Shown: piece after piece, positions 52,102-63,700 of the stretch
How the letters are laid out: every line of letters starts with the position of its first letter
Numbering within the stretch: position 1 is the first letter of the stretch
From: Bugula neritina
Taxonomy: Eukaryota > Animalia > Bryozoa
DNA length: 64,000 bases
Direction of reading: 5' to 3'
Assembly: GCA_964035545.1 (NCBI GenBank)
Contig: OZ037766.1
Span: 7,554,722 to 7,618,721, forward strand
Notes under the pieces: model-generated
Told to the model about the DNA's origin: nothing
Databases searched by the model: none
The model's input: only the letters and a program-made list of their open reading frames with translations
Position numbers and translations under genes: made by a program

Positions 52102-55100
52102 CTAATAAATATCAGGCTCAGTGATATTTATTATTGGAGAGTCTGCATATTGTACTGAGTCCCGAACTCCCTCTCTTACTGTGGGTGTCATATAATCTCC
52201 TGATGCAGCATCTGCTCTACTGCGCTCACCCAATTCAATTGTATACGAATATTCTCCAGGTGGGCTCTGTTTACTCTCCAGTAATTTAATAGATTGTAGA
52301 AGCTCACTAAAGTGTGGCCTATTCTCTGGATTGGCACTCCACATCAACCTCATTAGGTCATATCTGTAACGAAATAACTTCACATTTACTGCTGCACTGT
52401 GATTTCTGCAGTTAGCTATTCGGGGCATATTATATTTATCAGATGGTAATATTCAAACAAGAGATTAACATGCAGTTGCTTAGAATATTTGTTCAGGCCT
52501 CACCACATACAATTGATAATACTCATAACTGACACTATCAACTGGTTATACTCACAATTGCTGAGATAAATTGTCAGGTTTAGAAAGTCTATAACCAGTT
52601 TCCAGACATTCTTGTAGAACTGACAAGTTGCCAATGGCTGGGTACGGAGAACTGCCATTAGTGAAGAGTTCCCAAATGGTTACCCCGAATGACCACTGGA
52701 ATAAAGATTTTTACTCTGATTAATCTTATTTCTAGAGAGAGAGAGAGCAAATCTTAAAACAACTTCTATCCTGTATTTTACCCAGTAAATTTAAGTTAGA
52801 GTTGTCAACCCGAGGAATTGAAATGAGTTCTAGTATTAAAATCATGTTCTGAAGAATTTCCCTAAGACTTGTAAATAACTGATCTGTAGAGATGCTATTA
52901 GATTGAGTTCTATGCATTACTTATGTACTTAAAATGTACATCAGCTCACCACATCGGATTTGTGTGTAAATGTTCCTTGCTTTATGCATTCAGGAGCCAG
53001 CCACTTCCATGGCAACTGCTTTTCAGTGACATCTGAACACTCGTATACTCTGCTGTCATATATATCTCTGGTTAATCCAAAGTCACTTATTTTTATTACA
53101 TACAGCTCACTCACCCTGAAAGTGAAATTAAAGGTAATTTAATTTTCATAGTATTCAACTTTTCACAACATTGAGATAGAATATTTCATACCATACAATA
53201 AGTTAATAGCTTCCAATTCAAAAACGATTAGCAACTTTAACATTTCAATTATTATTTATGTAATAAAAATATTTTATTTACAAGTACAAAGTTACACACA
53301 TACTTAAAAAATAGATGTACATTTCATGTAGCATGTTATATATGTACATTTTGGTTATTTCAAATTTCATAATATGTATTGTATTTCAGATAGATTACAT
53401 GTCATTGTAGTTTAAAAAATGCTCTGGTTTTTTATGTGGTTTGAATGAATTCCTGTTGAACTCTGGAGAATATTTAAACTCACAAGCAGTTACGTAATGC
53501 TATGTCTCTGTGCACGAACTTCATTCTCTCAAGGTACTCCAGTCCCGCTGCAATCTGCACCACAAAACTCATCCGATCCGTTTCACTGAATTTCTTCAAC
53601 ATAAAAATAAATAAAGTATAATTGGTAATGAGAACAGCTGCTTTTTTAATTTGTGACTCAAACTTAATAAACAGTTAAATAAAAAGTATTTCTAACAAAT
53701 GAACTCAACACATTGCTACCCGCATGCCATGTTTCATCAGTAAATGTTGCAGATAAATACCAAACTGTGAGGTTCTAAAAGAACTAATGATAGTTAAATA
53801 GTAATGCTAATAATGTTCAAACACATGACATATGCTATTCAGCCCAATTCCTATATCATTAAACATAATTATATGTATATTGTCTACAAGCAATCAATTA
53901 TTGTTATTGCAAACTTAAAATGCTTGTGACCTAACCATATACACAATCAAAGTACCAAACTTAATTTTCTTATATCTATACATGACTATTAATAAACTTT
54001 AAGCTAACCCTACAGCACATGAATAAAGCAACTTGAAATTTTTGTATTTGTAGTTTGTTGAAAAAGTTACAATAATAGTTTGATTTTTTGGCACTAGCAT
54101 ATAATATTTTAGTTATTGTCAGTTTTTCCTCAATTTCTAGTAAACCAATGAAATTGTAATAATTGAAACGAATGTAGCTATCAACAACTGCAAAACTAGT
54201 AAACAAGTTGTTGAGAAAATATGTTTGAAGCAATGTTGCCATAAATCTTACTTCAACTTTTGAAGCCCTAGCTTACCATGATACGGTTTAAGTGCATTCA
54301 AGACTAATTTGATATATCTGGTGAGTTTTAGGTGCACTAAGCTACTCGAAGGTACACAATCTTAGTCCTCACCATTTCACTCCTTTTGACCAGATCCAAC
54401 AGACTGCCTTTTCCCATATAAGGGCAGACAACTGCTGGGGATTCATCATTTTCCCAAATTAAGCCAATAAGGTTGATTACATTGATGTGATCAAATTGAC
54501 TCATGGTGTAGGCCTCTCGGAGGAAACTATGCACCTCTTCCTCATACTTTTCTCTGTTAGGATTCCTAATAGTCTTTATAGCTACTAACTTATATTTGGA
54601 GAGATTGGCGTCTGTAAAGTATTTAGCCTTTCTGATAACTCCGAACTGACCTGAAAAAAGGCAAGAGTGTAATTATATACTCCATTTATTCTACTACTGT
54701 ATTGTAAGAACATGTATAAGGCTCTAAGATATCCCTCAATATGTTTCACAGTTATACTGCAAAACGCTACTAAATCAAATTAATATAATTTTAATATGAA
54801 CTAAAGCTTACAACTGTTCATACTACCAGCAAATTTTAATGGCACTACTGAATAAACTCATTTTATTAAATAGCATGCTGAACTAAGCTCAAAATGCTAT
54901 GTTAAAAAGCCTTTGTTACAATAAGCTTGATAGATCCTATAATCATAATCTCAATTAGTCGATAACCATATTGACACTAAATGAACTGGTAATTAAATTA
55001 TTTAATAATACGTAATTATATATAATAAATATAAATATATATGTAATAATATATCTCAACTATGTTTTTGTAGTGAAGTGCAGGTAATACCTGCTTTAAT

Positions 55101-58100
55101 TTTATAGGCTTTAAAGGTAAATGTCAGTGGTCTCACTATTTGTGGTTTGCAATGTTTCATTATATATGGGTGACAGTTGTTGTTGTAAGTTTATATGCTG
55201 ATTTATTCTTATAGTTTTGTCGTTTCTGTAACATTTTTATACAAGTTGAATTCTAGTGTTTATTATGCCAGAATGAAATCAATTTATATAAAGCATAAAG
55301 CAGTTTGCTTTTTTTCTCTCTGTGTGGTACATTGAACATTCAAATCACCTTATAAGATGCCACTGCAGAGCTCTGTTGAAAAATCAAGTCTTTTTAGTTA
55401 AATCAATAAAGATAATAAGTTGTTAGCAAATAATTGTTTAACATAGCTGCTCCCTCATATACATTTGTTAAAATTTTTGTAGCTAGCAAATGAGAAAAAT
55501 AAGTTTTCAGTAAAAAAGGCCGAGTTTTATTGTAACTCATCTGAAATTTTGTTTATGATTGTCATATTTGCTGAGTGCAGCCTTCACTCATTTCTCAAAT
55601 TGCCAACACATCACTGTTTTCAACCAGCGTATAACATTTGCTTATTGCCATTAACTATTAGAGTTATCCTCTCAAATGCAAATTATTAAATCTAGTTATA
55701 TGAATATATGCATAAGTGTCATGACAACCACAAAGAATTTGTTGCTTAATAGAATGAAGCTCTAGTCCAAATTTTTGCAACCTATTTTGGTGGCATTATA
55801 TAATTTAGATCTCATTTATGGTAGCACCATCAACTATATACTTTATAGAGGGCACCTTGCAGTACCTTGTAAGATTGTCATTCTAAAAATATGTTTTACA
55901 GTGTAGCATGAAGGTGCAGTCATCTGGTGAACCAACGTTACAGCTCTTTAAATAGTATAATTTATTCAAGTGTAACTAGCTTGTTGTGTAAGCATAGACA
56001 CCGATGACAATATCATGATTGATAGACATACCCCTGCCTATTTCTTCCATGACTTCTATATAATCCAATGGCAATAAGTGTTGTTTTACCATATTCTTTA
56101 TTTCTTCAGAACACTGGTCCAGGCTAAAAGCTGACTTAAACTTTGCCTCTTCATATGAAGCATCAGGCCCATAGTTATAGCTGTTCTCATTTCTTACTGT
56201 CAAACAAACTAAAATATTGTACTCTTTTCAGAAGTAAATATATATTCATATATGATTTAAATAATGAACTACGATAACGTTGGCTTCAAGGTGCCAGCAT
56301 TAAAAATATACTATTATATCTCATGACCTAGTAATATCCTGGTTTTTGTATTCTGTGACACGCACACCGAGTATTTATTGTAACAAGCTGAGTTTTATGA
56401 ATCCTAAATAAAATACGCTCAAATTAGCATACTGCTAATCCTAAAAGTGCTCCCCAGACCGATTGTCCTTGTCAGAGTCGTTTCTGCTTATCTGAACATG
56501 AGTTATATGACTCACCTCCCAAACCAATCTCACTCATGGATTCATGTTGTCTTCGTTTCCGCTGCACATACCAAAGCACTGCTACGATCATGGCGACTAT
56601 AATGACCGTGCTTACCACAACTGGCACTACTATTGCTGTCACGGAAGCAGTGGTGGTGGTGGAAAATGTTGTAGCTAAATTAATAAAAGCAAGTTTTTGT
56701 TGCATGCAAGCTCATGTTAACAAGTATCTTGCACTTTCTACTTCATCGTTTAATAACATTTTTAAGAAACTAACATTGATTTGGTTTTGGTGGTGGTGGT
56801 GGATCAGCCACACCACATTGATCTACCATCCACTTGGCGTACTGTATGATATCAGGCGCTTGAGGCCGTAAGGAGCATGCGTCCTCTCCAAATGCGTGTG
56901 TAATGCCGTAATCAACGCAGAGCCTGTCTTCTAGTGCACCACGCCCACAATCTACATCTCTGTCAGAAATAACGTGATTGAACACACAGTTCCTGGCGCA
57001 TTGATCGTCGAAAGCACACTCTTTCCAGTCAGTGGCTGTCACATCTACCAGTTAACATATTGCACATCCTAGTATTTTGGTATGCCCAATACATCAACTT
57101 CATATCAATCCATGTTTATAATGGTAAGATATTGTCATGCTATTCTAAACATTGCTATGAAAGGAAAATTTGCAAAATATTTCCTGCTATGAGTCATTAA
57201 AACGCCAATTATCAATATATAGCATATAGCAGAAAATATTTTAGTTTTTTTTACTTCTAATTCTTGGGCCAGTCCGGCTGGTGCATCTCTCGTAGTAGAA
57301 CTCTGATATAGAGTATTCTCCACATGTCTCTCTTTCACTCGGAAGGGCTTTTGGCCAATCATGAATTATACATTCGCCTAGTACTGCAGGATTCACTGGT
57401 TTATTTAGCTCTACCTAAGAGGAGTTTAAACTTTAAAGTAATAAAAGTTAATATTAGTGATTATAATATGTAAAATGAGGTTTATTGGAATTGTTTGCTA
57501 GGTGTCTTGAAATAGGGTCAACTCTAATGTGAAATATTTGGCATTAACCTATCAAAATGCTTCTTTTAAATGATTCCTTGAAATATTGGCACCAAAGTTG
57601 TGGTAAACTTGTTTTTTGTAAATTTTGAAATAATCACATAGCTGAGTATAATAGCATCACCATTTAGGTGCAGTAGTAGAAAACTTTCCAGATGCCTGAG
57701 TTCTTTAGTTTTCTTTAAACAAATTTTGTTTACTGCATTTCTAATCTAGAAGACAGGCTTTATTTAATTTCTCCATTGCTGCACCTACCTCATCAAAATC
57801 TGCATTTGCTTTAAAAATAATTTGCTTTGAAAACATTTGCTTTAAAGTAGTGCTTTTGGCTCAAAAATCAAGTTTTAGTTTAAGCTGACAAATGCTACGA
57901 GATATTGGTTGACAGAAGAGCCAAAAAGCCAATGCGGAAGTAAGTAAAAGCACAGGTATGATTGGAGTTATGACCTTTGTTACTGCAGCACGTCAGCCCG
58001 AGAGTATACTTACAGTTCTTATGCAGTTTAAGCAGCCAGCAGTAATTACGGGCAGCACTGAAAATGTAAATACATAACATCAAGTATACAGTCTTATAGA

Positions 58101-58382
58101 GAACAGCATTAATGTTGTTACAATCACACAGTTCTGTGAAATACTATAAGTACAAGTATAGACTCGTGATGGGTCTGTTGTACTAATTAGTAAAAAAGTA
58201 TATTCTGTTGAAATGCTTCTTGCAAGCATGACTATACAATATTGTCACACCTGACTTGTAGCTAGTTAATACACATCACTTGATACTGAAACCTTCTCTA
58301 GTTACTTGCCAGCTATTGCCAACAATATGGCGATTGAGTTCATCAACACAATAGTGTGTCGAAAGTATGAGCATTGCACCAT
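52102..58382 (-). CDS. Receptor tyrosine kinase (MET/RON-like kinase) with an extracellular i-type lysozyme/destabilase-like domain
   Basis: Exons 58382-58310, 58057-58014, 57414-57255, 57044-56775, 56674-56516, 56196-56032, 54650-54373, 53593-53484, 53115-52950, 52695-52556, 52363-52102 join in phase to 608 aa. Signal peptide; Cys-rich ectodomain; TM (AIVVPVVVSTVIIVAMIVAVLWYV-QRKRR); kinase motifs IGRGQFG, VAIK, HRDIALRN, DFGLTRDIY, LPWKWLAPE, SDVWSFG. Exon 1 requires a GC donor. Confidence 0.9.
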
Positions 58383-58579
58383 TTGACAGATGTGCATTAT
58401 ATTGCATGCAGTGGCATTTTCTGTCAACCAAAATTGTGTATGTACTTCAAAATGGAGGACATACAACTTCACAATAGACTTACTAAATATTTCTCTTCAA
58501 AATTTATCTGGATATTTAGGGATCTGTACACATAATTTTGCACAACATATTTTCATGAATGCCGCTAATATTACTTGAA

Positions 58580-58583
58580 CACA

Positions 58584-58622
<39 letters not shown>

Positions 58623-58645
58623 GCACACGCGCACACACACACATA
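58580..58645. repeat. (GCAC)n/(CA)n microsatellite upstream of the RTK start codon
   Basis: Visible directly. Confidence 0.95.
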
Positions 58646-60704
58646 CGAGCCACTGTTGGAACTCCTGTTGGTAGGGGTTTGCAAGGGCTGTATGCTCACT
58701 ATGCAAACAACACAATTTAATTGAACCTCTATTTGTAATAAAGGATCAATAAATGCTATTCCAGGCATCAGAAACTATGATTGGAAACAATCACAGTACC
58801 ACTAATATTTTACCTGGTTGTATAGACACATGTAGGCTAATATTTAACTATATAAACATGTCTACACAGTTTGTACAGAACAGAGTAGAGATAGTCCTTC
58901 AAATAACTTACAAACTACATGAATACTTTGGATATAAAGATATTGTAGCATTTTTGTTAAAGCAAACCTTTAATCAATAGTTATCAGATTTTATTGTTTT
59001 TAAACTACTCATATTGATGTTATTTGACAATAAAACTGTATAGTATTTCTGTATAGTTATTTATAATATAAACTATATGCAAGACTAACTTATACACTTA
59101 GTCATAATATAAGAGTATCTCAAGATACAAATGTCATTTTTTTCTTTGACATACCTTCAGTTTTCCACTCCATAAAGTCCAATTATAACAGAATTTCAAG
59201 GTCTTGGAATAAGTCAATGTAACATGATACAATAATATTGTGCTACCCAGTCTATACAATGCAGTGCGGTGGTGTGAATAGTGAACACTACTGGTCACGT
59301 TAGAAACACTGCTCAAATACTAGTCTATAACTTATTATGCTAAACCAAACTATCACAACCATGACGACACACTTTCATGTCAAGCGGAACATGATTTTTC
59401 AAATGTGTTGGAGTTCTTTTTCTAAAAATAAATATTAATGTTACGCATGGCTACAACATAATTATAGCGAATGAGAAATCATCTCACGTAAATCCTTATC
59501 ATTTCAACACCATTTGAGAACCACCAGAAACAAGCATATCTACTGCTCATAGGTTCAACACTAGCATTACTGTCAGTGGTTGGCATATCTCAGTTTGCAT
59601 TATACAGCACCTGAGGGACTTTTTTGTTTGGTTTAAATTCATAAATTTTTCTCCAATCATCAACCATCACAGCACAATAAACAAGAGTTAAACTGTGACA
59701 TGAGCTTTTGTTAGCCTCCGTGTTACATAACAGTGGTTTTTATAGTTAGTTTTGCAGGAGCTAATATGATGCACTGCAGTATTTATTACTTTTTTGATCG
59801 CTTCCAAACAAGCATGGCATACTTTAGCAGACCCTCACAAAAACTTTTGATTACCAACTATTTAAGCTAAGCAGTACTTGTACTGGTTTATAAATGCAAA
59901 GATAATATGTTAATGTCTATTTTAGCCATGAGCCAGAACTTTTGAATATCATTTCCTAAAGCATTTCAACTGTATCAACTCGCACACTAAAAATGAATAT
60001 ACCCACGCAAATAAACTAAATTAAATTTGTATACAACTATACCCTACCATGCCAATTATCGACTAGATGTTTAAATATATGCAATCAAATACCAAATGCA
60101 CTAGTTTGTGCATACACAGTACTGTGAATCTACTTCTATTTTGCCATCTTCATGTGGGCATAGAGCCACGACCAATGCCAGTTATATGTTATAGTTTGTG
60201 TACAGTTGAACAATCACCACGTCAGTTTCTGCCAGCATTATTTGGTTTTTATTAGTGTCATTTACGTTTCCAATAAACAAAATATCCTATTTATAAACAA
60301 TTATATAATTCAAATGAGAGAAAAAACCTAGCTTTGGAGTTGTATTCTCAACCTGCTATCTTGTGCCGTAGCCTTACCATAATCTTCACTATGACACTAC
60401 CAACAACAAGCTACTTTATGGATATAAAGAAAGTGAAAGAAGCAATACATAAATTGACTCACAATGTTCAGAGTTATTTCCCCTTGTTACTTTTTGCCAC
60501 CTATTTTAATATTGTTGTCCTCTGGTCAGAAATCGTACCTCGAATCTTTTATATCTACTTAACAGAGATAAGCCATGTTTACTTTCACATACGCATGTAA
60601 TATAATCAAACAATGAGACAGAAATAACACAAGTAAGGAGCAACTTGACACCATACCCTTTGGTTTTTTTTAAATTGAACACCAGAGTGAACAATTACAC
60701 AAAC

Positions 60705-63700
60705 ATGAAGGACAAGATGGAGTGCCAGTTGGTCTTTATTGTTCTTGTGCTAGCTCTGCCTCAGATATGTGCAGAACAAAACTTAATTGGTATGTATGCT
60801 TATCCATATAAGTAAGTACAGTACCAATTTCCTTTCACAGAAACTTAAATTTTTTTATATCGAAAAATATTGTTGAGTTGAAAGGAATTAATAGCTGTTG
60901 GCATATAAAGTGTTATCATATGTTTTGTTTACTATTTCTACTATATTTCAGTTAATGTACTAAATTACTGTGACTCAATTCTGTCTATGGCTCCCAACTC
61001 TAATGGCTATCTTATTGTAAAAGATCAAGGAACAGAGGCTATAGACTGTCTCATGGCTATTAAATCTTCTGCAGATAACGTCATTTCAACACGATTTCTG
61101 GTAAAAATATTTTTGTTTTTGAGTTTTTTAACAACGCACTTGAAATAAAGTAATCAACGCTTCAATGAGTTTTTTCAGCTTGACACACGAATACCAACAT
61201 TCATTACATCAGATAGCAAATGAGTGTGAACTGCATATTTTAGGAAATAAACTTTCCGTCATGTGACCAGACAAGTTTGGAGCTAATCTCAGTTTTGGGA
61301 CCATCAATAAATGATCAATACTCTGTCTTCGTATCCAAACCATTTTTCTGTGGTAAAAAAATGTCAGACGTGATCGACTTTGATCAGTATGGAGAGAGGC
61401 AGTGGAATATCTCACTGAGGTCGACTCCAAAGGGGGAACATAGTTATGCCAAATTCGCATTTTCAGTTCGTAAGCAAGAATTTTATCTCGCCTATTATAT
61501 GCTCAGAATTATTATAAAAATAGGCCCATATATTCAATAACAAAAATGGAAGCCAGCCCCACAAGTTATAATGCGAATCTTTCTTGTTAATGCATGATAG
61601 ACGTTGAATGTTCTGTTATGTCATAAATATATCGTGTCTTTAGATGAGCCAGACAGTCCAGCACAATTCCCATCAATTCAGAGCCCAGAAGTGTCCTCAA
61701 CAATTTCAACAACACCAACTTCAACAACACCAACTACAGCCGCACCAACTACAGCCGCACCAATTACAACCGCACCAACTACAGCCGCACCAACTACAGC
61801 CGCACCAACTACAGCCGCACCAACTACAGCTAAACCAACTACAGCCGCACCAACTACAGCTAAACCAACTACAGCCGCACCAACTACAGCCGCACCAACT
61901 ACAGCCGCACCGACTACAGCCGCACCAACTACAGCCGCACCAACTACAGCCGCACCGACTACAGCCGCACCAACTACAGCCGCACCAACTACAGCCGCAC
62001 CAACTACAGCCGCACCGACTACAGCCGGGCCAACTACAGCCGCGCCAACTACAGCCGCACCAACTACAGTTGCACCAACTACAGCCGCACCAACTACAGC
62101 CGCACCAACTACAGCCGCACCAACTACAGCCGCACCAACTACAGCTAAACCAACTACAGCCGCACCAACTACAGCCGCACCAACTACAACCGCACCAACT
62201 ACAGCCGCACCAACTACAGCTAAACCCACTACAGTTACACCAACTACAGCTAAACCAACTACAGCCGGGCCAACTACAGCCGCGCCAACTACAGTCGCGC
62301 CAACTACAGTTGCACCAACTACAGGTAAACCAACTACAGGTAAACCAACTACAGCTAAACCAACTTCAGCTAAACCAACTACAGCTAAACCAACTACAGT
62401 TGCTCCAACAAAGCCTCCTATTTCAACATCAACTACAGCAGTTGCAACAACAAGTCAAAAATTAATTTCAAAGCAGCCAAGCACAGCTAAGGCAGACCCT
62501 ACATCAAAATATACTAAAACGACACCACCAATCAAGAATACCGTTACATTCAGGTAAGTGGTAGCAAGTTACTGCGTTAAATGATTGGGCTTTTCTTAAA
62601 ACACTCTGTATTTTTCTTGGATAGAAAGGCTATGAATATTATGCCAAATAATTTTTTAAAAAAATTGTATGTGGCTGTGGGTCCAAGTTATCTAAACAGT
62701 ACGAAAATGTAACCCAAAGCTTATCATCACTTAGATAAGATAACATTATATTCCATGCATTATATTGAATATATTCCAATGTATGTGAGAATTAACCAAA
62801 TTTGTGATTGCAGTTTTTATAATTTCATCTGTCCAATGTTTACCACTGACACTAGGTATTAGTGTCTGTTGGAAACCCGAGTCATCACCAAACTATTCAT
62901 ATAATCAGTGAGTAAATGTTCTAAGCAGTTGATCTTGGCAATATGCCAGGTTCATTTCAAGTAAAATATAAGAAAAAAAACTAACGCAAAGCTTACCTGT
63001 ACAATAGCAATAAACGTAACAAAAATCATTTGAAAGTGAAATTTCAAAATAATAAAACTTATTAGAAATCTTTAGAATTATTTTTCCAGGTGTTCTTGTC
63101 CAATATCAATCACGGACTCCATTACCAAGTCAGCTATCCCTGGAGCTCCAATTGTTCATCTTGACAAATCATCACATCTTGTGTTTGATATAGCTGCAAC
63201 TGAAGGTGCTTCGTGTGGCAGCAACAGCTTAAAGAGCCAGTGTCAGCATCTCTGTTATAATAATGGTAAGTTATACACATATCTGCTGGTTTTCATAGCA
63301 ATATAAAGAAATGAAATTCTAAAGAAAAAACGTCTAACAACCCTACATTGAATTCTGGGAGTCAGCAACTTCACATACTGTCATACTCATCCTTTTAGTA
63401 AACTTATAACTCACACAGGGTGTTGGTTGCTTATATAATTGTCAACTAGTAATTAACTAATTATCTATTGATCTGGCATTCATATAATATTATATGATAT
63501 AAAATTATGCCATACCATATAATGTTATGTGTCATACCATATAATATTAAATATCATACCATATAATACTATATAATGTTATATGACATATAAGCATAGC
63601 ATGTATAACTGAACACCTATGAATATTACTTTACAGCGTACAAATTCTATAGACTCTATGGACCCAACAAAGCCGTCAGTATAAATGGAGCGTACAGTTT

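Follow-up and report, generated by a model that had tools for sequence, protein, structure and literature searches.

A Bugula neritina gene that joins a lysozyme-like domain to a single-pass tyrosine kinase

The window analyzed here, a stretch of 64,000 nucleotides of Bugula neritina DNA, carries a real, expressed, single-copy gene whose product is a 590-residue single-pass tyrosine kinase. Its N-terminal portion (about 155 residues, 12 Cys) consists entirely of a diverged i-type lysozyme (destabilase) fold. The architecture alone, a lysozyme-like domain followed by a membrane helix and a tyrosine kinase, is very probably correct. The fuller proposal, that this is a receptor gene of fusion origin whose outward module binds GlcNAc/MurNAc glycans and signals downstream, has about an even chance of being right. 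Because lysozyme-like domain, membrane anchor and kinase are joined in one gene, it could couple recognition of bacterial cell walls or chitin directly to phosphotyrosine signalling. A sequence-only reading of the window had recognized no described class of receptor tyrosine kinase with such an outer domain, and a search for one in the literature and among long database proteins likewise found none.

Gene model and splicing

The gene model comprises 11 minus-strand exons from 59173 to 52102, all with GT..AG borders, that together give 1773 bases and 590 codons with no internal stop.

Exon 0, 59155-59184, minus strand: 5' UTR (seen at least to 59184), ATG at 59173-59171, codons MEWKTE plus one further base; donor GTATGT
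Exon A, 58014-58057, minus strand: VLPVITAGCLNCIRT, with the first lysozyme motif CLxCI; phase 0 end; RNA joint 57414/58014
Exon B, 57255-57414, minus strand: VELNKP...CGEYSISEFYYERC...RIR, first half of the lysozyme-like fold; spliced to both neighbours in the RNA
Exon C, 56775-57044, minus strand: C-terminal half of the lysozyme-like fold and poly-Pro stalk; donor GTTAGT; RNA joint to the membrane exon
Exon D, 56516-56674, minus strand: Ser/Thr stalk, membrane helix AIVVPVVVSTVIIVAMIVAVLWYV (hydropathy maximum 3.06), stop-transfer QRKRRQHE; RNA joints
Exon E, 56032-56196, minus strand: juxtamembrane region and first part of the Gly-rich loop (EEIGRG); L010, L015 and L020 have homologous exons
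Exon F, 54373-54650, minus strand: kinase N-lobe, including GQFGV, VAIK and the Glu of alpha-C; PF07714 positions 11-95, E 2.2e-13
Exon G, 53484-53593, minus strand: catalytic loop HRDIALRN; PF07714 positions 99-133; RNA joints
Exon H, 52950-53115, minus strand: DFG, activation loop (DIYDSRVYE), PWKWLAPE; PF07714 positions 139-187
Exon I, 52556-52695, minus strand: kinase C-lobe (WSFGVTIWE...); PF07714 positions 188-231; RNA joints
Exon J, 52102-52363, minus strand: end of the kinase domain (NPENRPHF) and Tyr-rich tail; stop codon 52104-52102; RNA joint 52363/52556

The three small exons proposed by the sequence-only reading (58057-58014, 57414-57255 and 57044-56775) are in phase and yield the peptide that it quoted. 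Spliced contigs from X1 and X2 contain every junction of the model, among them the predicted joints 58014/57414, 57255/57044 and 56775/56674 and the six joints of the kinase exons; none was found in the DNA run X3. X1 and X2 were both made from a single sample of a sibling lineage. They carry the label RNA by guess only, though the GT..AG borders at their joints point to cDNA. The aligner shifted three joints by 1-3 bases. Two of them agree with GT..AG borders plus one synonymous variant each; in the remaining one, which links exon C to the membrane exon, the junction codon is replaced (tct to ccg, Ser to Pro).

One contig of 689 bases leads from exon 0 through exons A, B and C into the membrane exon and the juxtamembrane exon. 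The in-frame stop at 56772-56770 is inside the intron after exon C and is removed by splicing in the RNA contigs. The 5' limit was wrong in the earlier reading, which had set it at the ATG at 58382. This ATG is out of phase with exon 58057-58014 and unused; the RNA contig runs to the upstream exon, with the start at 59173. Exon 0 was located by the loose end of the X1 contig at 58059, which is an exact match to 59157-59184, and an in-frame TAA (59185-59183) lies a short distance 5' of its start codon.

Lysozyme-like and kinase domains

The expected Destabilase and tyrosine kinase profile matches were obtained exon by exon. Exon C alone matches Pfam Destabilase (PF05497) at 27.7 bits (cut-off 26.2, E 3.3e-6) over profile positions 50-104 of 116. 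Exon B alone has no match in the Pfam scan; its profile-profile alignment (hhalign) with exon 2 of canonical lysozymes has a probability of 91.6 and an E value of 8e-7. The relatives L010 and L015 (contiguous) reach 45 bits on PF05497 at profile positions 23-108 of 116. The solved structures matched by sequence are 3AB6, 4PJ2, 8BBU and 2DQA.

The fold was modeled on L010 (L010:800-1213), a relative 41% identical to exon C, without its first 22 residues, and not on the joined protein of the window. The AlphaFold model has a pLDDT of 78, and its top six Foldseek matches are all i-type lysozymes (probability 1.00). VIA-align of the L010 model with solved i-type lysozymes gave Z values of 9.3-9.6 and an rmsd of 2.4 Å over 96 residues, so the anticipated structural match holds for this relative.

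The protein has, as modeled on L010, the fold of the i-type lysozymes (PF05497; Tapes japonica 2DQA, Meretrix lusoria 3AB6, Hirudo destabilase 8BBU), and it has in common with them the motifs CLxCI, (V/I)E, CGxY, YYxxC, W..CA..CA..CV and C.DYG..H. The earlier claim that the lysozyme pattern is followed from end to end is true in part. The first half of the domain has an insertion of 4-10 residues in the catalytic hairpin, the Cys number 12 rather than the canonical 14, and the Asp is ambiguous and not conserved. The canonical CGxYQI motif lacks its QI here, and the loop ahead of W..CA is enlarged. Two additional motifs, CGRG....R.C and WM...CGV.D, are conserved across the family and absent from canonical lysozymes. 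Those lysozymes are small and secreted, whereas the receptor has 590 residues, lacks a signal peptide and is tethered by a helix to a kinase.

The sequence-only reading placed a Pro/Thr stalk, one membrane helix and a tyrosine kinase after the lysozyme exons; all three are there, and the kinase is complete. Five exons tile PF07714 positions 11-257, and the kinase motifs GRGQFGV, VAIK, HRDIALRN, DFG and PWKWLAPE, read directly, are all intact; the activation loop has two Tyr. The Tyr-rich tail in exon J includes YSYTIEL, DYMTP, VQYADS and PDIY. The best solved relatives of the kinase exons are all tyrosine kinases: MET, Mer, FAK and RON are closest to exon F, and MET, FGFR and InsR/IGF1R to exon H. 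MET is the top solved match for two exons, near Mer, InsR and FGFR, at 33-41 bits, and membership of the MET/RON class is not established because these per-exon scores are modest. SPAVVCPYMGKGSL and the activation loop RDIYDSRVY resemble the MET sequence, and the receptor is, like MET and RON, single-pass with a Tyr-rich docking tail. It differs from that class in the absence of a signal peptide. Pfam detected no Sema, PSI or IPT domain of the MET/RON class in the scanned exons, those of the ectodomain giving Destabilase only.

Topology, relatives and origin

The protein has a single hydropathy peak (3.06, residues 179-197), followed by QRKRRQ, and L010, L015, L017, L013 and L020 likewise have one membrane helix. 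A positive cluster is found on the kinase side of the helix wherever the flank is seen (QRKRRQ, RRQK, RKKKRE, RKKKRK, KRRHKR). The sequon CAxN(x)[ST]CA is kept in six of nine relatives. A signal peptide was sought in the window protein, which starts MEWKTE with a stop just upstream, and in L010, and was found in neither. The segment MEWKTEVLPVITAG is weakly hydrophobic (best 9-residue hydropathy 2.03), and its L010 counterpart, MLDWKTDILPQVTDD, is acidic. L010 has a first exon of the same phase, M(x)DWKT(D/E), as in exon 0 of the window.

The earlier description of a receptor tyrosine kinase with a lysozyme ectodomain therefore stands as to destabilase fold, stalk, helix and kinase, which are on one RNA-verified transcript. 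The word ectodomain is used here presumptively because the signal peptide is lacking. The lysozyme-like module is probably outward-facing, since positive-inside charges follow the helix and the domain has a Pro/Ser/Thr stalk, 12 conserved Cys and N-glycosylation sequons. Outward placement without a signal peptide would require reverse signal-anchor (type III) insertion, and it is unusual for a leaderless domain of this size (about 175 residues).

At least four loci have lysozyme-like, membrane and kinase exons in line: the gene described here, L010, L015 and L020. In the last three, as in the present gene, a juxtamembrane exon lies between the membrane and kinase exons. L017 and L013 show the same exon order up to the membrane or juxtamembrane exon. 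In the canonical lysozyme genes of this genome, as in the receptor gene, one intron (phase 0) follows CLxCxxx and another (phase 1) interrupts the DCG...W loop. Their exon 1 ends in CLSCLRQ/gt and CLDCIGK/gc, the same place as the end of exon A, and two of them (L006 and L007) have normal leaders. These common intron positions and phases suggest that this small family originated by fusion: the three exons of a secreted i-type lysozyme gene, minus what encodes the signal peptide, were probably linked to the exons for the membrane helix and kinase of a MET/RON-like receptor.

Coding differences from the sibling lineage total 26 synonymous and 3 non-synonymous, a ratio that excludes a pseudogene. 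Of 20 listed or inferred coding differences, 18 are synonymous. Exon C differs from the sibling-lineage contig L014 by 8 synonymous changes, 1 non-synonymous change and one 3-base in-frame deletion, and all 8 listed variants in exon F are synonymous. These sequence comparisons show purifying selection on the gene.

Ligand binding, catalysis and alternative readings

The Glu at the catalytic position (VE or TE), the second codon of exon B, is invariant in all six relatives and shares its exon-start position with the IE or VE of four canonical lysozyme genes (L002-L005) found in this genome. The catalytic pair of the Tapes enzyme is Glu18 and Asp30. In the Asp region the window reads C-I-I-H-D-W versus C-N-W-D in the canonical genes of this genome, and placement is ambiguous; an Asp-like residue is present in only three of the six relatives, and hhalign pairs the canonical Asp with Pro. 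In the window gene, L010 and L015 an Asp is retained at a distance of two to five residues from the preceding Cys (HDW, HTDW, HDDW); L017, L013 and L021 lack it. Because the catalytic Asp is unplaceable and not conserved, the module is more likely a ligand-binding domain than an enzyme, as judged from sequence, although the invariant Glu could point to some residual activity.

The sequence-only reading had hypothesized that the receptor recognizes peptidoglycan, chitin oligomers or isopeptide bonds. We propose that the module works mainly by binding a ligand, most likely a glycan that contains GlcNAc/MurNAc, for example a peptidoglycan fragment or a chitin oligomer. If polymeric, such a ligand would cluster the receptor and lead to trans-phosphorylation of the activation-loop tyrosines, and the phosphorylated receptor would recruit SH2/PTB proteins to its Tyr-rich tail. 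B. neritina keeps a bacterial symbiont, Candidatus Endobugula sertula, that is transmitted vertically, and the larvae of many marine invertebrates settle on bacterial films.

It is also possible, if rather unlikely, that the lysozyme fold is a mere scaffold for recognition of something other than a glycan, for instance a protein. Such a ligand could be a factor secreted by the animal itself, a determinant of self/non-self, or one of the lysozyme inhibitors of bacteria, such as PliI. PliI binds the cleft of i-type lysozymes, a solved complex of the two exists (4PJ2), and the heavy remodeling of the first half of the domain (hairpin insertion, lost QI, expanded loop), together with the family-specific motifs, would fit such a partner. 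No candidate partner was identified, however, and the invariance of the Glu is easier to explain with a sugar-binding cleft that is still in use. That Glu, with the Asp of the window, L010 and L015 close to the canonical C-N-W-D position, would suit a still active membrane-tethered muramidase, chitinase or isopeptidase whose substrate turnover is reported or regulated by the kinase. We consider this reading improbable. The relatives without the Asp, the Pro aligned with it, the loss of 2 of the 14 canonical Cys and the insertion in the hairpin all speak against it, and since purifying selection spans relatives that lack the Asp, the conserved function would appear to be independent of the Glu/Asp dyad.

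Two further explanations concern the protein itself rather than its ligand. The missing signal peptide in both the window protein and L010 would be accounted for if the Cys-rich N-terminal domain were cytosolic, or if the protein were no surface receptor at all. This is very improbable: the kinase requires cytosolic ATP, the positive charges sit between the sole hydrophobic helix and the kinase in all relatives with the flank seen, and the conserved Cys, the stalk and the sequon fit lumenal exposure. A chimeric assembly, a read-through of two genes or a decaying pseudogene has a negligible probability. Apart from the small size of the exons and an in-frame stop shortly after exon C, nothing hints at such an artefact, whereas independent DNA contigs of other samples have the exon order of the window, spliced RNA crosses the lysozyme and membrane exons, the 590-codon frame is open, and the ratio of synonymous to non-synonymous differences excludes a pseudogene.

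Glycan binding, as preferred here, has parallels in other systems. Plant LysM receptor kinases (CERK1, NFR1/NFR5, LYK5) sense chitin, peptidoglycan or symbiont signals. They embody the same concept, a module derived from cell-wall-lytic enzymes outside one helix and a cytoplasmic kinase, but the likeness is a proposed functional analogy: the binding folds are unrelated (LysM versus a GH22-like lysozyme), the origins are independent, and the plant kinases are Ser/Thr kinases of the RLK/Pelle type whereas this one is an animal tyrosine kinase. That the present genes represent an animal receptor tyrosine kinase family convergent with these plant receptors, sensing peptidoglycan or chitin directly through a lysozyme-derived, disulfide-rich ectodomain (roughly 175 residues) inserted without a signal peptide, is a tentative suggestion that we regard as somewhat doubtful. 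An animal precedent is Drosophila PGRP-LC, a non-catalytic PGRP that signals via the IMD adaptor pathway. There an amidase fold has lost catalysis and now serves as a membrane sensor of peptidoglycan, although, unlike the receptor described here, PGRP-LC has a different fold and no intrinsic kinase.

Exon structure and transcription of the receptor gene

The minus strand of the window carries an expressed gene whose exons encode a lysozyme-like N-terminal domain, a membrane helix and an intact tyrosine kinase, an architecture that is conserved in related loci. The assembly has an automatic Ensembl annotation (PMC11480708). The exons listed here were obtained by sequence reading.

Exons of the receptor gene
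59173-59155, minus strand, exon 0, coding part
58057-58014, minus strand, exon A (lysozyme-like)
57414-57255, minus strand, exon B (lysozyme-like)
57044-56775, minus strand, exon C (lysozyme-like)
56674-56516, minus strand, exon D (membrane)
56196-56032, minus strand, exon E (juxtamembrane)
54650-54373, minus strand, exon F (kinase)
53593-53484, minus strand, exon G (kinase)
53115-52950, minus strand, exon H (kinase)
52695-52556, minus strand, exon I (kinase)
52363-52102, minus strand, exon J (kinase end)

All introns have GT..AG borders. Exons were searched singly, and joining was confined to local scripts (frame, length, hydropathy and codon effects); the joined exons span 1773 bases and form an uninterrupted frame of 590 codons. 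The three small minus-strand lysozyme exons splice in phase exactly as the sequence-only reading had stated. The in-frame stop at 56772-56770 sits just beyond the exon C donor, GTTAGT, and is therefore intronic.

The upper limit of 58382 proposed earlier for the gene start has to be abandoned. An exon beginning at ATG 58382 stops two bases into a codon, exon A requires one preceding base, and no other GT yields the correct phase; the RNA contig enters 59155-59184 instead, and the 28 letters at its end match 59157-59184 exactly. The coding part of exon 0 begins with ATG 59173, has the six codons MEWKTE and ends at the donor GTATGT. Nine bases before this ATG there is an in-frame TAA, with no AG in between. 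The resulting N terminus, MEWKTE-VLPVITAGCLNCIRT-VELN, is at best weakly hydrophobic, and the equivalent exon of L010, a related locus on another contig, has the same phase and encodes the acidic MLDWKTD-ILPQVTDDCLACVRK. A signal peptide is absent from the receptor family. The intron between exons 0 and A contains a compound microsatellite of ACGC/AC-type units (58500-58720), which produces repetitive ORFs on both strands, e.g. CVRACVRACVRA. Upstream of the gene, on the opposite (+) strand, a long mucin-like ORF of repeats occupies 61604-62557.

Transcripts were found in runs X1 and X2, which represent one RNA-type sample labeled symbiont metagenome and dated 2016. Their contigs are 90-99% identical to the window, indicating that the sample came from a sibling lineage; the label and the identity would fit the B. 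neritina cryptic species complex. All receptor-gene junctions are present in these contigs, and in the DNA run X3 the introns are read through, with no joint at those junctions. Three of the X1/X2 joints lie 1-3 bases away from the GT..AG positions. For two of them a synonymous variant at the border of the exon accounts for the shift; at the third, which links exon C to the membrane exon, three letters are replaced and the junction codon changes from tct to ccg (Ser to Pro). A single contig of 689 bases runs from exon 0 across all three lysozyme exons and the membrane exon and reaches 29 bases into the juxtamembrane exon; other contigs share these 29 bases and then extend through the kinase. 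The possibility, raised with the original proposal, that the lysozyme exons end without joining the kinase was checked, and spliced contigs join lysozyme, membrane and kinase exons. Unspliced pieces also occur; their word depth is much smaller, contig depth being a rough measure. Compared with the sibling lineage, 18 of the 20 coding differences listed or inferred are synonymous, and exon C shows eight synonymous differences out of nine plus one in-frame 3-base deletion in a poly-Pro run.

The intron between exons A and B includes a short high-copy repeat (57729-57795) where X3 depth is ~6100, vs ~106 nearby, and where many contigs of X1, X2 and X3 stop or branch. Between exons E and F (54924-55348), 423 bases of the window are missing from a low-depth, unspliced sibling-lineage contig (X2 record 10); either the intron is polymorphic for an indel or one lineage alone has a small mobile element here. 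L014 (positions 450-527), a sibling-lineage metagenome contig, matches exon C and the preceding intron and then departs abruptly after ...AAACCAAAT into unrelated sequence with a poly-T end. This 3' tail is probably an assembly chimera, and the part beyond exon C was excluded.

Fold and origin of the N-terminal domain

Exon C alone matches the Pfam Destabilase (i-type lysozyme) profile with 27.7 bits (cut-off 26.2; E 3.3e-6). Exon B alone had no match in Pfam, and exon C alone had none among sequences of solved structures. A profile of six exon-B sequences from the family matches that of canonical lysozyme exon 2 (probability 91.6, E 8e-7). In L010 and a second related locus, L015, B and C occupy a single exon; these relatives reach 45 bits across profile positions 23-108 of 116, and the L010 sequence also matches 3AB6, 4PJ2, 8BBU and 2DQA. 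An AlphaFold model of L010:800-1213 has a mean pLDDT of 78. Its best six Foldseek matches are all i-type lysozyme/destabilase entries with probability 1.00, separated by a large gap from the next, and VIA-align gave Z 9.3-9.6 and an rmsd of 2.4 A over 96 residues. A language-model search ranked i-type lysozyme first. The fold evidence comes from L010, a relative that shares 41% identity with exon C; the model is without the first 22 residues, and short exon-B rows, misplaced in alignment A1, were omitted from the folding alignment. By HMM and modeled structure, the receptor N-terminal domain is assigned to the destabilase fold family, outside its secreted enzyme class.

Eight ordinary i-type lysozyme loci are present elsewhere in the same genome (G000), and these clusters are likely the parent type of the receptor's lysozyme exons.

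Canonical secreted i-type lysozyme loci
G000:C1:642.8-678 kb, L002-L005, four loci (cluster at C1:643-678 kb)
G000:C2:12.53-12.79 Mb, L006-L009, four loci (cluster at C2:12.5-12.8 Mb)

A normal leader is present in L006 and L007, the loci for which the fetched stretch includes the first exon; the first intron of L006 is GC-AG. The third Cys of CLxCIC is absent from the canonical genes of this genome too, so its absence is not specific to the receptor. Canonical genes have a phase 0 intron immediately after CLxC(I/L)xx and a phase 1 intron in the loop that connects DCGxPG with W..CA. In the receptor gene the first lysozyme intron is at the identical point and the second is in the same loop, here nine residues longer, both with the canonical phases. 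These common positions and phases fit an origin by exon shuffling, in which an entire lysozyme gene, apart from its leader, would have been placed onto a receptor kinase.

The kinase and the related loci

The kinase exons cover positions 11 to 257 of PF07714 and encode GRGQFGV, VAIK, HRDIALRN, DFG, PWKWLAPE and two activation-loop tyrosines, followed by a tail with four tyrosine motifs; no pseudokinase signs were found in the kinase motifs read from the exons. The kinase is of the receptor type, without a leader. For both exons tested the best solved relative is MET, and RON, Mer, InsR and FGFR come next, yet the scores are modest and the kinase cannot be placed in the MET class.

A search of 1.84 billion representatives with exon C returned only 14 matches: 12 short exon-sized gene calls (mostly 44-52% identical), one near-identical fragment, and P0013, which has four canonical lysozyme repeats and no kinase and was the only long protein with a lysozyme-like domain in that set. 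The threshold was strict for an 89-residue query, and fusions of canonical-type domains in other phyla could escape it. A word-index protein search with the L010 ectodomain found only P0006, a gene call at the same locus; this search is insensitive and says nothing on rarity.

Lysozyme-like, membrane, juxtamembrane and kinase exons are in line in L010, L015 and L020, and L017 and L013 have the same order up to the contig end; the contigs of L016, L018, L019 and L021 are too short to show exon order. The related contigs come from runs SRR30417838/39, SRR31252243/63, SRR25569774/77/78 and SRR31840192/94. The kinase exons of the related loci are clearly relatives of one another, which argues that the lysozyme-kinase fusion arose once and that the gene has diverged since. 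The window's genome has one copy. Candidates for a second were rejected: every other destabilase locus encodes a canonical secreted lysozyme, and the closest kinase exons, only 38-45% identical, are located elsewhere.

Putative binding function, topology and significance

All six family members seen carry a Glu at the catalytic position, encoded by the second codon of exon B, and retention of enzymatic activity by the lysozyme-like domain is possible. The second catalytic residue is uncertain. Canonical B. neritina lysozymes have C-N-W-D and the window has C-I-I-H-D-W followed by a 4-residue insertion; in the Trp-anchored hhalign alignment a Pro faces the catalytic Asp, whereas a Cys-anchored alignment would permit the window's Asp to correspond. 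The window, L010 and L015 have this Asp; L017, L013 and L021 lack it. Constraint across the family, together with an Asp that is not universal, suggests that the Glu/Asp dyad is probably dispensable for the conserved function, and a putative binding module is therefore favored over an enzyme. Ligand would bind the former substrate cleft, and the bound ligand would cluster receptors and so activate the kinase; we infer clustering through this cleft. The most economical ligand would be a GlcNAc/MurNAc glycan. A protein ligand is possible instead, and the receptor family would represent a new ectodomain class for receptor tyrosine kinases even with a different ligand.

The sole hydrophobic helix is preceded by a Pro/Ser/Thr stalk and followed by QRKRRQ or a similar run in every relative with that flank seen, and twelve Cys are kept. 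A CAxN(x)[ST]CA sequon is kept in 6 of 9 relatives; the window lacks it and carries NVT at residue 75 instead. From such features we infer that the Cys-rich domain faces outward. An outward domain without a leader would require reverse signal-anchor insertion, for which neuregulin-1 is one precedent; export of about 175 residues in this way would be unusual, and a receptor located away from the cell surface is possible. The route by which a large Cys-rich N-terminal domain is exported without a leader is itself a cell-biological question.

Animals sense peptidoglycan via PGRPs, NODs and lectins, and LysM receptor kinases are the plant counterpart; we know of no animal receptor tyrosine kinase that reads cell-wall glycan directly. 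The receptor, known here from sequence and transcripts, would share the presumed way of working of receptor tyrosine kinases and is alike in concept to plant LysM receptor kinases and non-catalytic PGRP receptors. In open-access text no paper joins a destabilase or i-type lysozyme to a receptor tyrosine kinase architecture, and the combination is also absent from the long database proteins searched at the strict threshold, in agreement with the novelty claimed for it from the sequence. Unusual ectodomains are no rarity among the lineage-specific receptor kinases of invertebrates, which lessens the surprise; the origin of a receptor from an enzyme, the lack of a leader and the symbiotic setting increase it. 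The gene is a testable candidate for coupling microbial cues to growth-factor-type signaling in a marine animal that carries symbionts and settles on biofilms. A lysozyme fold coupled to a tyrosine kinase would be a clear example of exon shuffling converting an enzyme into the head of a receptor, and lysozyme genes of the parent type persist in the same genome, available for comparison.
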